From Camelus ferus (Eukaryota): a DNA stretch of 64,000 nucleotides. Positions 3,421-23,333 of this stretch are shown piece after piece. The DNA lies in the NCBI RefSeq assembly GCF_009834535.1, contig NC_045705.1, forward strand, positions 71,796,001 to 71,860,000, written 5' to 3'. Both the position numbers and the translations under genes were made by a program. The stretch's first letter is position 1, and every line of letters starts with the position of its first letter. Under the pieces are notes generated by a model. The model was given only the letters and a program-made list of their open reading frames with translations. It did no database searches and was not told the DNA's origin.

Positions 3421-4944
3421 GTGGCTGTCCTCACAGAGCCCGCACGCCTAGTAGGGTGGAGATGCTCCTGGGGACCCTTCTTGAACAAGTGTGGGGGTCC
3501 TGAGGAGCCGGTTTTAAGGCACCAAAATGCATGTGCAGGAAAAAGCCAGCAGGAAATAGACCAAAATATTTCCAGTCGTTATCTCTGGAAGTGGGGTGAC
3601 TTTTTCTTCCTTATACTTCTCAACTTTTGTTTTTTTCCACTTTTACATAATAAACATGTGATATACTAGAAAATGGTATTTAAAGCAGTGACACAAGTGC
3701 CTGTGCCTGTGAAGGTGAGTGACAGGTGGGGGCACCCCAAGCACTCCTTTGGGGGCACAGCCCTGAGGCTGGTTCCTGTTACAGGGTGCTGGGAAAAGGT
3801 GCTGGGTGGGACCTGCGTGTGACCATCCTGCTGGGGGAGAAAACCCCAACCTCTTCCCAGGGGTCCTCCTCCCAGCCCCCAACCCACCCCTGCACCCACC
3901 TGGAGGGGCTGGCCTGGCAGCTCTGGGGGGCTGGAGGCCTCCGTCTCTCCAGGAGCCTCGGATCCTGCTCAACTGGAACAGGTTGTGACTATAGGACAGG
4001 ACCTTGAGACCAAGGGGGGGTGGCCCCTGGCACAGGCACACCGGCAACCTGCTGAGCCGGCTCTCCCAGTCAGGGCAGTCCCACTACCGACCGTTATTGT
4101 TGGCTGGGGGCCGTGGCCACCGCCACCCCAGCTGCCCCATGCCCTGAGGGGAAGGGGCAGATGTGAGCTTAACCAGGTAGGACTAAGAACTCTGGACAGC
4201 CAGCGAAGTTCTGGACTCTGTGCCAGCACCCCTCACCCCCATGGGCCCTTTGGGGCACCAAGGAGGGTTGGTTGCATCCCCTCAGACTGCCCAGGGCAGC
4301 AGAAGCTTTCAGAAAACCATATCTACCCCAGAACAAAGTCCAGCCCCCTTCAACTCAGACTCCACCCCACCTAATATCCCAGATCCCTCCTGGACATGGA
4401 CAGGAGACTGGGTACTCTGCTGGGGGGAGGCTGACGGGGAACAAGATGTCTGCATCTGGCCTGTGAGGCTGGTCATGACAGGGGAAGACCTGCACCTCCC
4501 ACAGCGCCTTGGGGGGAACACCGAAAGTGGAGCAGCCCCCCCCCCCACGCCACTGCCAGGTCCCCAGCACTCAGCTTGGGAACCTTCTCCGCCACAACCA
4601 TCCAAACCTGAAATCAGCCCCACGACCCCACGTCACCGTGGAGTGGAGGTGAAGACACCACCTTTTGTAAACACTTCTTAGTTTTTACTTAGCAAGTATC
4701 TTGGTCCCAAATATTTCCACTAGCCCTTGGAAAGCTGTGCCCAAGGGTCCCAGCCAGAAGAGTGAGCTGGAGGGGGTCAGGGGGAGCCCCAGTCCCGGCT
4801 GGCAGGCCTAGAGGTGCCAGACTCAGGGAGAGCAGCCCCTGGAAGTCATGACCTGAAGCTGTAGAGACTGGTCAGCTGGGGGTGGCGGGGGTCGGGGGGG
4901 GGTTGTCCCATACAAGTGAAGGAGGCAGGGGCTAAGCTGTCACA

Positions 4945-17520: not shown

Positions 17521-17935
17521 GCTTGGGCCACTGCCCCCACGTGGTAGAAGAGAGTCCTGGACCTCTGGTTAAAGCTGATGGAGAAGATTGGAGGTGGGGC
17601 CTGGACCCACGACTCTTGTGCGGGAGCAGGAGAGGGGCAGGCAGCCAGGATACCTGACAGCCCTAGGAGTCCCTTGTCTAAGTTTCCAGATTTGGGACGT
17701 GAAGCCTCACTCCTCCCCCATCCCTCAAGCAGGTCCCCAGACCCATCTGCACACAGGGGTCTCCCTGCCTGCTGTCTTGCCCAGCCCCATTTCAGCGATG
17801 ACCTGTCCAGCCTAGGCTTTGGATTCTGAACCAGCTGGCCTGGCTCAAGGGCTCCCCCCAGCCAGAGTCCCCCTTCCTACCCACTCCTCCCCCTGACCTT
17901 GCAGCCTCCCTGGGCCCTGCCTGAGCAGGCCTGCC

Positions 17936-17955
17936 TGGCAAGCTGGGACATGTCT
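17936..17955 (+). promoter_or_regulatory. p53 response element in the PIDD1 exon 2 5'UTR
   Basis: TGGCAAGCTG (8/10 to RRRCWWGYYY) directly followed by GGACATGTCT (10/10). PIDD1 is a known p53 target with an element in this region. Confidence 0.8.
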
Positions 17956-17980
17956 GGCCCCCGAGGACGACTGGTGGGTG

Positions 17981-20900
17981 ATGGCTGCAGTGGCGGAGGG
18001 GCTGGAGACCGAGTCAGCTGCTGTAGAAGATGCTGCAAGAGATGCTGCAGATGCTGTGGATGCAGGGCTGGGGGTGCCCCCTCTCCTGGCTGGGAACCGG
18101 CTGAGCCTGGACCTGTACCCCAGGGGCTGCCACCGGCTGCTGCACCTGTGTGCCCAGCAGGTCCCTCAGCTGCTGGAGGTGGAGTTCCTGCAGCTGAGCA
18201 GCCACGAGGACCCTTGGCTGCTGGAGGCCACCCTGGCCCGGCTGCCCTGGAGCCTGCCACGTCTCCGCTCCCTGGTCCTCAAAGGTGAGCCCTACCTCCT
18301 CCCAGCCCTGTCCCAACCCCATCTCTAGCTCCTGCCTCTGCCTCTTGGTCCTCACGGGCAAACCCGATCCCATCCCCTCCACTATTCTCTGCACAGCTCT
18401 ACCCATCCCATTTTCCCCCAAGAGGGAGCTGGCTGAGCCCCACTCCTGGGCCCTGCAGCTGCCCAGTGGGGTCCCCAGAAGACCCCTGCGTGGGTATTTT
18501 TCCTGGATGGGGGCTATCTGCTGAGATGATCCTGCGTTGTCTGTCCCTGCCTCCTCTACCTGCTGCTGTCTCTCCAGTATCTCTGTCGATCCTTGTCTGG
18601 TGGGGTTGGGGTGGAGGTCTCTGTTTCCACGCACCTATTTCCATGGCTAGCAGGGCTGAGCTGGGACCTAGGACTCTGGCTCTGAGGGTCATGTCTGCCT
18701 TTCCCCCATCCCAGGTGGGCAACGCCGGAATGCTCTGGGTGCCTGCCTCCAGGGCTCCCTGACCACACTGCCTGCCAGCCTGAGTGGCCTCACCCACCTG
18801 GCCCACCTGGATCTGAGCTTCAACAGCCTGGAGACGTTGCCAGCCTGTGTCCCACAGATGTGTGGCTTGAGCGCCCTCTTGCTCTCTCATAACTGCCTCT
18901 CAGAGCTGCCCGAGGCCCTGGGGGCGCTCCCTGCCCTCACCTTCCTTGCCAGTCACCCACAACCGCCTGGAAACACTGCCCACAGCACTGTGGTCCCTGT
19001 CCACCCTGCAGCGCCTTGATCTCTCTGAGAACCTTCTGGACACTCTGCCCCCTGAGATCGGAGGCCTGAGCAGCCTTGCTGAGCTCAATCTGGCCTCCAA
19101 CCGGCTGCAGAGCCTCCCTACCTCCCTTGGTGAGTTGCAGCCTTGGCTCACTGGGCCTGGTGGGGAGCGCCTGTCGGCCACTGCCCGGCCTGCACTCTGC
19201 CGTGGCCCCTATCTCCTCTGCGGGGCCCTGCACACACAGGCTTGCCCACTTTTGAGCCTTTTCCCCCTTGGCAGCCCCCAACTTCCCTGGCCTTTGAGGC
19301 TCCCTGCACAGGCCTGCCTGAGCTCTCTAGTCCAGCCACAGGGCAGAGACTGAAAGGGCTTCTCTGGGAGGCCCTAGTGGGAGCAGCCTGCCCTGGTGCT
19401 CCAGGCCAGGGATGGCACTGAGCAGTCCTCTGCTGGCCCTAAGCCAGTGCCTGCCCGCAGCGGGGCTCCGGTCCCTGCGGCTCCTTGTTCTACACAGCAA
19501 CCTTCTGGCCTCGGTGCCCGCCAGCCTGGCCCGCCTCCCACTGCTCACCCGGCTGGACCTGAGGGACAACCAGCTCCGGGACGTGCCCCCCGAGCTATTG
19601 GACGCCCCCTTTGTGCGCCTACAAGGAAACCCCCTGGGCAGGGCCCCCCCGGCCCCCCACAGCCCCCCAGGTAGGCTTATTGGTGTGCAGGGGCAGACCA
19701 CAGTCAGGACGCAGCTGTCCCCACCATCCTAACAACTTGCCTGTCTTTCCACAGGGACACCCGTGGTCCCAGAAATGCCCAGACTCTTGTTGACCTCAGA
19801 TGTGGACAGGTATGGTGTGGGGGAGAGGAGGGGCTGGAGAAGCACCTGTCCACGCCTCGGGGGTCTCCCTTCTCAAACTCGCCTTTCTCTGTCTGACCTG
19901 ATACCCACTCTGTCCCCTCTCAGCTTCCCCGTGACCCCTCAAGGCTGCTCTGTGACCCTGGCCTGTGGCGTCCGCCTGCAGTTCCCTGCTGGGGCCACTG
20001 CCACCCCTGTTACCATCCGCTACCGACTGTGGCTGCCGGAGCCCCGCCTCGTCCCCTTGGGTCCTCATGACTCTCTGCTCAGTGGTGTCCTGGAGCTGCA
20101 GCCCCACGGGGTGGCCTTCTTGCAGGCACAGCCAGGGCGGCTCGGGGGGCGGGTGAGGAAGGCGCGGGTCTGGCCCCAGCGCTCATGCTGCCCTTGCCTG
20201 GCAGGAGGTGGGCCTGTGGCTGCTGTTTGTGCCACCACGGGCCCGGCGTTGCCGGGAGGTGGTGGTCAGGACCCTGAGTGACAACAGCTGGAGTGACCTG
20301 GAGACCCACCTGGAGGAAGAGGCACCCAAGGTGAGGGCTGTCCAGGCCTGTCCGGGAGGGGGAGCAGCTCTACCCTAGCCCCGACCCTGTTCTCTCTAAC
20401 CCTGCCTCCGACGCCCAGCGGCTCTGGGCCCGCTGCCAGGTACCCCACTTTTCGTGGTTCCTTGTGGTTTCGCGCCCTGTGTCCAACACCTGTCTGGTGC
20501 CACCAGAGGGGACATTGCTGTGTTCCTCGGGACATCCTGGGGTCAAGGTCACATTCCCCCCTGGGGCCACTGAGGAGCCCCGGCATGTCCACATGCAGGT
20601 ACGGGCTGGGCAGCTGCCAAGGGTGGTGGGCGTGCCTCAGCACCGAGCTGAGTGTTCGGGTGGCCTGCCTGCTCCAGGTGGTGCACGTGGGCAGCAGAGG
20701 ACTGCCAGCCCTGCTGGAGGAGCCTGAGGCAGCCGCGAGCCCCTTGCTGTGCCTCACCCAGAGTGGTCCCCCAAGCTTCCTCCAGCCGGTCACTGTGCAG
20801 CTGCCTCTGCCCCCCGGCATCACAGGTGAGAGGCAGCGGCATGTATCCCTGGACTTGTGGCCCCGGGGCGGGCAGCGATGCTCAGAAGGGGAGCCCTGCC

Positions 20901-22895
20901 AGGGTGGCCTCAGCCTGCGGCCCCTCCCACCCCAGGCCTGAGTCTGGACCGCTCCCGCCTGCACCTGCTGTACAGGGCCCCTCCTGCAGCCGCCTGGGAT
21001 GACATCACGGCTCAGGTGGCGCTAGAGCTCACCCACCTGTACGCCCGCTTCCAGGTCACACGCTTTTCCTGGTCAGTGCTCCCTCTGGCTTCCTCAGTCC
21101 CTCCCCACCCGCCTGTCTGCACTGCCTGCCTCACCCCCCAGCTTCCCAGGTACTGGCTCTGGTACACCACTGCGACCTGCGTGGGGGGCCTGGCCCGGAA
21201 GGCCTGGGAGCGGCTGCGGCTCCACCGCGTGAACCTGATCGCACTGCAGAGACGCCGGGACCCCGAGCAGGTCCTGCTGCAGTGCCTGCCCCGGAACAAG
21301 GTGCGGGGTGGGGGCCGGAGGTCGCGGAGGGCCTGTCAGGAAGCCAGCCAGGTGGGGTCCAGGGGCCAGGTGGGGGCGCAGGGTGTTGGGCTCCCAGCCA
21401 GTGGGTACCCCCCAGGTGGATGCCACCCTGCGGCGGCTGCTGGAGCGGTACCGCGGCCCCGAGCCCTCAGACACCGTGGATATGTTTGAGGGCGAGAAAT
21501 TCTTCGCTGCCTTTGAGGGAGGCATCGACGTGGATGCCGGTACGCCCCCTGCCCCTGGAGAACGGCCCCTGCGGTCAGCCCCCTGGGTCCCTGCTGAGCC
21601 CGCCCCTGCCCCCAGGCCGTCCGGACTGCGTGGAGGGCAGGCTGCGCTTTGTCTTCTATTCGCACCTGAGGAACGTGAAGGAGGTGTACGTGACCACCGC
21701 CCTGGACCGGAAGGCTCAGGCTGTGAGGGGCCAGGTGAGCCAATGGGGTAGGGCCCCCTGGGCCACCTGGGCAGAGGCAGGAGCACTGAACCCCACCTCA
21801 TCCCCCCACCCAGGTGTCCTTCTACCGGGGAGAGGTGCCAGAGGAGGTGCCCGAGGAGGCGGAGGCTGCCCGGCAGAAGAAGGGCATGGATACCCTGTGG
21901 ATGGCCACTCTGCCCATCAAGCTGCCGGTGTGGCCTGGCGGGGGGCAGTGTGTGAAGGGGCAGGGGGTCGCCAGGGGTACAGGGATGGAGCCTGGGGGCA
22001 GGGGCCAAGGCTCACTGCCACTGCATCCTCCCCACAGAGACTGCGGGGGTCCGAGGGGCCAGGGCACGGGGCTAGCCTCTCCCTGGCACCTCTGAACCTG
22101 GGCGACGCTGAGACTGGCTTCCTGACCCAGAGCAACCTGCTGACTGTGGCTGGGCGCCTGGGCCCCGACTGGCCAGCCGTGGCCCTGCACCTGGGCATGC
22201 CCTACCGTGAGCTGCAGCGCATCAGGCATGAATTCAGGTGAATTCCTTTCAGCCTCCTGCCACTGGTCTCAGGCCAGCCTCAGGCCTGGGCCTGGCAGCC
22301 CGGAGGGCCCTGCTTGAGGCTGGCTGAAGTTCCGTCCACAGGAGGTGGAGCCAGGGCAAATGGGCAGGGAAGGGAGGGTCTGCCCACCCTTAGCCTAGGG
22401 ATTGAGGAACCCATCAGGGGAGGGTGAGCACCACCCTGGGTGTGGTGGGTGGTCCTGGGCTGGGCTGGGCTAGGCCGGGCCCCTCCCTCCCTCTCTCTCC
22501 CCTCTCTCCCCTCTCTCCCCTCTCTCCCCTCTCTCCCCTCTCTCTCCTCTCTCCCTCTCTCCCCTCTCTCCCCTCTCTCCCGTCCCTCCCGTCCCTCACC
22601 ATACCCCCATCATCCCCCCATCATCCATCCCCCCAGGGACGACCTGGATGGACAGATCCGCCATATGCTCTTCTCCTGGGCTGAGCGCCAGGCTGGGCGG
22701 CCAGGAGCTGTGGGGCTCCTAGTGCAGGCCCTGGAGCAGAGTGACCGGCAGGACGTGGCAGAAGAGGTGCAGGCCATTTTGGAGCTTGGCCGCCGCAAGT
22801 ACCAGGAGGGCATCCAGCGCACAAGCCTGGCCCCCGGGGACCTTGGTCCACCTGGCCCTTCAGCGTTGCAATCCCCAGAGCCTGCCCAGGCCTAG
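17981..22895 (+). CDS. PIDD1: p53-induced death domain protein 1 (LRR-ZU5-ZU5-UPA-DD); reading frame broken by a 1-nt insertion in exon 3 in this sequence
   Basis: Exons 17981-18284, 18715-19129 (415 nt; needs 414), 19461-19670, 19755-19809, 19924-20125, 20205-20330, 20419-20598 (PHFSW), 20678-20825, 20936-21071 (TRFSW), 21150-21300, 21416-21539, 21616-21734, 21814-21927, 22038-22237, 22637-22895 (death domain, ...PEPAQA*). Gene identity is certain; functional status is not. Confidence 0.95.
22481..22600. repeat. Polypyrimidine (CCCTCTCTC)n-type simple repeat in the last PIDD1 intron
   Basis: About 100 nt of only C/T, with ~9-nt periodicity. Confidence 0.95.
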
Positions 22896-23333
22896 AACCC
22901 ACCGACTCTGGGCTGGTCCCTGACACTCCCTGGCCAGTGGTTGGAAGCTCCCACTTTCAAGCCTTCTCTGGGCATGGGGACAGTGACCCCCGTGTGTAAC
23001 AAACGTGTAGTGTTCTGGCTGCTGTCTCAGCTCAGTTTATTTGTTGGGTGGGAGGGCAGGTGGAAGGTGAGGGGTGGCTGAGAGCAGAGGCCTGGCCCTG
23101 CTGGGAGGGGCCCTGCGAACAGACTCTCCCACAGCCCTTGCTCCTGTCCTGCTCCTCCTCACATGCCTTGGGCCTCCTCTTGGTCCTGATCTTCTCTGGG
23201 AGTGGTTGGGAGCCCCAGCTACAAAGTAACGGCTGCAGCACCGATGGATACAAAGTCACCAGTTAGCGGGATTGCGCATCTGCCCTTGGGGCAGGCTGGT
23301 GGGTGTTTGGCCAGTTCAGTACCCTCTCAGCTC

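Follow-up and report, generated by a model that had tools for sequence, protein, structure and literature searches.

Arginine in place of histidine at the second autoprocessing site of PIDD1 in camels and nearly all Cetartiodactyla

Reviews of PIDD1 describe its His-Phe-Ser (HFS) autoprocessing motif as conserved, and the His at position -2 is considered essential in both PIDD1 and NUP98 (PMC9162469). Cleavage at the second site releases PIDD-CC, the caspase-2-activating fragment, which is needed for PIDDosome activation (PMC7883297). Trace amounts of PIDD1-CC are enough for caspase-2 activation, and mice unable to cleave at the second site are viable with ploidy phenotypes only (bioRxiv 10.1101/2025.06.23.660994); the dependence of PIDD-CC on this cleavage, as stated in an earlier note on the DNA described here, holds in both of these sources. 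According to D'Osualdo et al. (PMC3210808), the Nup98 substitutions H862A/Q only slightly affect cleavage, and NLRP1 and CARD8 carry Ser at -2 with the CARD8 substitutions S295A/Q having little or no effect. The crystal structure of the rat NLRP1 FIIND places a distal ZU5 His (H942) beside the nucleophile, with FS described as the catalytically essential motif (PMC8081665). The term catalytic, which the earlier note applied to the -2 His, is too strong in view of the distal position of the FIIND catalytic His and the mild effects of -2 changes in Nup98 and CARD8. A literature search for mutants of PIDD1 H444 or H586 gave nothing relevant (the mutagenesis of Tinel et al. 2007, which lay outside the search, may contain a PIDD1 His mutant), and it found no paper noting an Arg-Phe-Ser (RFS) variant and no experiment on RFS PIDD1. 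Searches on PIDD-CC in pig or bovine cells and on PIDD1 in cetacean or artiodactyl evolution returned nothing on point.

The window analyzed here is a stretch of 64,000 nucleotides from Camelus ferus (assembly GCF_009834535.1, contig NC_045705.1) and contains PIDD1 as a probably intact two-humped camel orthologue, the features of which are collected in Table 1. All residues of the NCBI C. ferus model (P0273, 913/913) map exactly onto the window, and the encoded domains are arranged in the order LRR, ZU5, ZU5, UPA, and death domain. The domain set expected of PIDD1 is completely represented in the Pfam matches of this protein, with LRR_8 (1.6e-26), Peptidase_S68 (8e-21), ZU5 (3.5e-14), and a C-terminal Death domain (1.2e-13). 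The exact mapping of the model, the placement of the camelids within a monophyletic Cetartiodactyla, and an omega of about 0.2 identify the gene as orthologous to the annotated mammalian PIDD1 genes and not a paralogue or pseudogene copy. Over the first 3.67 kb (3670 nt) of the gene the older C. ferus scaffold is identical to the window save one gap, and C. dromedarius shares 99.3% identity with it. Beyond position 3811 of the 17601-23200 query, at about window position 21400, the match to the older C. ferus assembly becomes poor, with gaps and 96.8-97.8% identity. A run of simple repeat coding for SLP/SPL is located in the last PIDD1 intron (window 22470-22600). CRADD and CASP2 lie outside this window.

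Table 1. Features of the PIDD1 gene in the C. ferus window (window coordinates)
Feature	Position	Strand	Remarks
PIDD1, start codon (ATG) to stop codon	17981..22895	+	15 coding exons, 913 aa
Extra base (GCC A GTC), shifts the frame in an LRR exon	18951..18951	+	Probable assembly artefact
First autoprocessing motif H-F-S-W, intact	20446..20457	+	CAC TTT TCG TGG; Pfam Peptidase_S68
CGC codon, Arg589 (human H586), -2 residue of the second site	21061..21063	+	Window sequence, other Camelus assemblies
TTT TCC TG, Phe590, Ser591 (nucleophile, human S588), and the first two bases of Trp592	21064..21071	+	Exon end 21071
78-nt intron, in frame, without stop codons	21072..21149	+	Retention gives 26 extra residues directly after FSW
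Next exon, G TAC TGG CTC TGG TAC ACC ACT..., encoding (W)YWLWYTTATCVGG	21150..21303	+	Start of PIDD-CC and UPA domain

The first autoprocessing site of camel PIDD1 retains the His-Phe-Ser tripeptide of Peptidase S68 (CAC TTT TCG, 20446-20454), with camel H447/S449 equivalent to human H444/S446, and the window piece 20416-20599 matches Peptidase_S68 with E=1.9e-10. At the second site the residue at -2 is Arg, encoded by CGC, and is followed by the Phe at -1 and the nucleophile Ser at +1 (TTT TCC, 21064-69). The window reads GTC ACA CGC TTT TCC TG/gtcagt at 21055-21073, the slash marking the exon end, with ACA at 21058-60, CGC at 21061-63, TTT at 21064-66, and TCC at 21067-69. The codon of Trp592 is divided by the 78-nt intron (TG at 21070-71 and G at 21150), joining VTRFSW to YWLWYTT, and the camel protein around the site reads ...LYARFQVT-R-F-S-W-YWLWYTT.... 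Direct reading of the window bears out the earlier note in the codons and coordinates that it gave for VTRFSW, in the intact PHFSW at 20446-20457, and in the presence of Arg in the camel where human and mouse carry the His of HFS. A further camelid substitution is seen at 21168-21170, where GCG encodes Ala at +9 from the scissile bond in the place of the Lys of other mammals (YTTATC compared with YTTKTC); this Ala, at human position 597, corresponds to one change on the tree of 46 species.

If the intron at 21072-21149 were retained, Trp592 would be separated from the YWLWYTT strand by 26 residues. Isoforms retaining the intron after FSW are annotated in C. dromedarius (P0185), Vicugna, hippo, sperm whale, gibbon, macaque, loris, and ground squirrel. 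The intron length of sheep (80 nt) and that of muntjac (76 nt) cannot be divided by three. Words across the exon-intron junction are present in RNA runs, where their source may be pre-mRNA.

The G at 21062, the second base of the Arg codon, is clearly defined in sequencing data. Every 31-mer of a 61-nt query (21032-21092) against the sequencing-run index includes 21062, and each of the 4 sampled 31-mers over this position recurs in 14 or more DNA runs, which carry two species labels, as well as in several RNA runs. A 1201-nt query reaches a share of 1.00 in 14 runs, which come from five studies and carry two species labels. The genomic DNA of C. dromedarius (GCA_036321535.1) and of C. ferus (GCA_000311805.2) reads ACA CGC TTT TCC TG/GT in both assemblies. 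The run support is k-mer presence in Logan contigs, a contig-level record with which a rare A allele would be compatible, and G at 21062 is the camel state.

The distribution of Arg at this position was followed in PIDD1 from more than 100 mammals, collected by three word-indexed searches and by scanning 1.8 billion representatives with HMMER, with further species added by cluster look-ups. RFSW is present in 29 cetartiodactyl species, which are all of those sampled in the order outside two small clades. Among camelids, suids, and the hippo these are C. ferus, C. bactrianus, C. dromedarius, Vicugna, pig, warthog, and hippopotamus; among whales they are five baleen whales, the sperm and pygmy sperm whales, a beaked whale, beluga, narwhal, and vaquita; and among ruminants they are sheep, cattle, yak, oryx, musk deer, and six cervids. 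His is found within Cetartiodactyla only in six delphinids and two muntjacs. A third cetacean state, Gln (QFSW), is present in Sagmatias obliquidens, the Pacific white-sided dolphin (P0245, P0246, P0266), matching the Gln at site 1 of some fishes. All sampled placentals outside the order have His, save Sorex araneus and S. fumeus with Arg; an unnamed shrew-like sequence and the desman have His at -2 of the second site. In the course of these look-ups the 90% cluster of sheep PIDD1 (P0182) was seen to include many SLC25A22 (mitochondrial glutamate carrier 1) proteins, apparently by way of a fused sheep gene model (P0228, 1217 aa), which is an artefact of database clustering that affects cluster sizes.

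At the codon level the -2 residue is CGC in C. dromedarius, C. ferus, sheep, and Sorex fumeus and CAC in muntjac and rhinoceros, and the single CAC/CGC transition proposed in the earlier note holds. The maximum likelihood gene tree of 46 mammals places Cetartiodactyla in one clade (SH-aLRT 99) and requires a minimum of 4 changes of the H/R character. Mapped on the accepted species tree, Arg is reconstructed as gained twice, on the stem of Cetartiodactyla and in Sorex, and as lost twice, in Delphinidae and in Muntiacus. Because CGC and CAC are the two codon states (the dolphin being seen at the protein level), the reversions would be G-to-A transitions at a CpG. In mammals no other kind of site mutates as readily as a CpG. 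Arg is an old and tolerated variant and the state of nearly the whole of Cetartiodactyla, not a camel-specific defect. The earlier note had taken it for a lesion of the camelid lineage, and this single-species reading fails because Arg is clade-wide and older than camels, with the two Sorex shrews sharing it. The same note had named, as an observation that would refute it, Arg being common among mammals with functional PIDDosomes; Arg is indeed common, and that the PIDDosomes of its bearers work is something we infer solely from conservation.

The selective regime was assessed on an 882-codon alignment built from five annotated proteins mapped back to their genomic loci, with pairwise omega calculated by the method of Nei and Gojobori. 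Gene-wide omega is 0.19-0.30 for all pairs, and the comparisons with rhinoceros give 0.21 for camel, 0.23 for sheep, and 0.23 for muntjac. In the PIDD-CC part, downstream of the second site, the value is lowest in muntjac, which has His (0.130), followed by camel (0.147), sheep (0.151), and Sorex (0.162), a range of 0.13-0.16 that Arg and His lineages share alike. The branches of the camelids on the protein tree of 46 mammals are short. Parsimony counted column by column on the 46-species tree gives 0 changes for each of H444, F445, and S446 at the first site and 4 changes, between H and R only, at human position 586; each of the positions 587-595 has 0 changes, compared with a gene-wide mean of 2.9. 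The Phe-Ser-Trp of the second site and the next six residues are accordingly invariant in the 46 mammals, and the -2 residue toggles between two basic residues in an otherwise frozen segment. A search over the four independent H/R contrasts for a compensatory column co-varying with position 586 found none. Judged from these figures, strong purifying selection acts on the remainder of the second site (Phe, Ser, Trp, and YWLWYT, the first strand of the UPA domain) and on all of PIDD-CC. The persistence of an Arg codon containing a CpG in many lineages, with His and once Gln as the alternatives, argues for a position under selection and not for a dead site.

An error of sequencing or assembly at 21062, or a rare allele, can practically be dismissed as the source of the Arg, given that all sampled words over the base recur in at least 14 DNA runs from several samples and species labels and that CGC is found in two other Camelus assemblies and Arg in 29 related species. 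Around the extra base at 18951 the window reads CTT GCC A GTC ACC (18945-18957). The reading frame is kept at the same place in C. dromedarius, with GCC ATC ACC (Ile), and in C. ferus GCA_000311805.2, with GCC GTC ACC (Val), leaving this assembly as the only one of three Camelus assemblies in which the reading frame is interrupted by this one base. The NCBI C. ferus protein is tagged LOW QUALITY PROTEIN and equals the window with base 18951 alone skipped. A and G, the two bases of a site variable among camels, are both present in the window, and their match to the dromedary and wild-camel alleles suggests a consensus error at a variable site; the insertion is probably an assembly artefact. The earlier note had counted this frameshift as a second lesion and had seen in the pair a hint of relaxed selection, and neither claim is supported. 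Decay of PIDD1 in camels, with Arg and frameshift as two independent lesions under relaxed selection, would take its support from the 1-nt insertion that breaks the frame in the window. It is nonetheless very improbable, as the insertion is missing in C. dromedarius and in the independent C. ferus assembly, all other codons of the 913-aa model are intact in the window, and the LOW QUALITY flag marks a frame corrected by NCBI against the genome sequence. Decay is also at odds with the camel-rhinoceros omega of 0.21 gene-wide and 0.15 in PIDD-CC, which is as in the His lineages, with the short camelid branches, and with an Arg older than the camels themselves.

The earlier note had predicted that Arg at -2 blocks or slows the release of PIDD-CC in the camel, and as a camel-specific loss this is not supported. 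Extended to the order, the idea is that Arg may block or strongly slow cleavage of the second site, with little PIDD-CC formed and a weakened caspase-2 PIDDosome but with the PIDD-C functions kept, and this would apply to camels, pigs, ruminants, and most whales, the dolphins and muntjacs having regained a fast site. The review that deems the -2 His essential for PIDD1 (PMC9162469) speaks for such an effect, as does the His of the first site, which never changes in 46 mammals when that of the second site does, showing that His can matter in the motif. The requirement for PIDD1-CC in PIDDosome activation (PMC7883297) gives the effect its consequence, the viability of mice with an uncleavable second site (bioRxiv 10.1101/2025.06.23.660994) suggests that such a loss may be tolerable, and the double return to His may point to a slight disadvantage of Arg. 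Against this stand the invariance of F, S, W, and the six residues that follow them in all Arg-bearing species, the retention of Arg in many lineages at a mutable CpG codon, a PIDD-CC omega as low as in the His lineages, the lack of any compensating column, the little effect of -2 changes in Nup98 and CARD8 (PMC3210808), and the sufficiency of trace PIDD-CC for function. A markedly slower cleavage of the second site across nearly all even-toed ungulates and whales, with His regained twice, is on balance unlikely. The conservation carries less than its full weight if F-S-W and the death domain are kept for the stability of the fold or for PIDD-C/NF-kB functions instead of cleavage at the second site, as they could be.

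The reading favored here is that RFS at the second site of PIDD1 probably remains competent for cleavage, with Arg a fixed and inherited character of Cetartiodactyla. A single transition from CAC to CGC would have occurred on the cetartiodactyl stem; dolphins and muntjacs would later have reverted to CAC at the CpG, and Arg would have originated a second time in Sorex. The N-to-O acyl shift at Phe590-Ser591 would still proceed and PIDD-CC would still be released, perhaps at another rate; the acyl shift likely still occurs because the rest of the site and PIDD-CC are kept under strong purifying selection. Arg, like His, would provide a polar hydrogen-bonding side chain next to the scissile bond, and the essential work would fall to a strained backbone that the buried Phe keeps in place and possibly to a distal base in the ZU5 domain.

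The motif and its His are regarded as conserved and essential, yet a whole mammalian order is characterized by RFS at the site releasing PIDD-CC, and pig and cattle cells, which are common in laboratories, carry it. This calls for caution in PIDDosome work with livestock models. An order with Arg, and with His back in muntjacs and dolphins, provides a natural test of the contribution of the -2 residue to ZU5-type autoprocessing and of the essentiality of the His, and the underlying sequences are all already in public databases. If cleavage of the second site were slowed after all, the order would have a different threshold for the supply of PIDD-CC and hence for the caspase-2/p53 response to polyploidy and extra centrosomes, and a natural hypomorphic, separation-of-function allele would have been fixed for ~60 million years. 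What appeared as a lesion of one species in a conserved motif is an old state of a clade, and its companion frameshift is most likely an assembly artefact.

The camel site is most closely related to the second site of human and mouse PIDD1 (H586-F587-S588, MEROPS S68), with which it shares an orthologous gene, the same exon structure, the LRR-ZU5-ZU5-UPA-DD architecture, an identical F-S-W-YWLWYTT segment, and a position at the ZU5/UPA boundary from which PIDD-CC is released. The differences are Arg for His at -2 and YTTA in the place of YTTK, with Ala for Lys at +9. The FIIND of NLRP1 and CARD8 (ZU5-UPA, S-F/S) belongs to the same fold family and is likewise cleaved between Phe and Ser at a domain boundary with the fragments remaining associated, whereas its -2 residue is Ser and its catalysis is performed by a distal ZU5 His (hNLRP1 H1186, CARD8 H270, rNLRP1 H942), illustrating that the residue at -2 need not be His. 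PDB sequence and profile searches for a link between NLRP1/CARD8 and the second ZU5 of PIDD1 reached only the ankyrin ZU5-ZU5-UPA and the PIDD death domain. The Nup98 autoproteolytic domain (H-F/S) shares the tripeptide and the N-to-O acyl shift chemistry in an unrelated fold. The PIDD1 orthologues of fishes and jawless vertebrates complete the comparison, as F and S are invariant at both sites in the vertebrate alignment from lamprey to mammals, but the -2 residue is variable, being Gln at the first site in gar, tarpon, and barramundi and Ser in hagfish and Glu in lamprey at the second.
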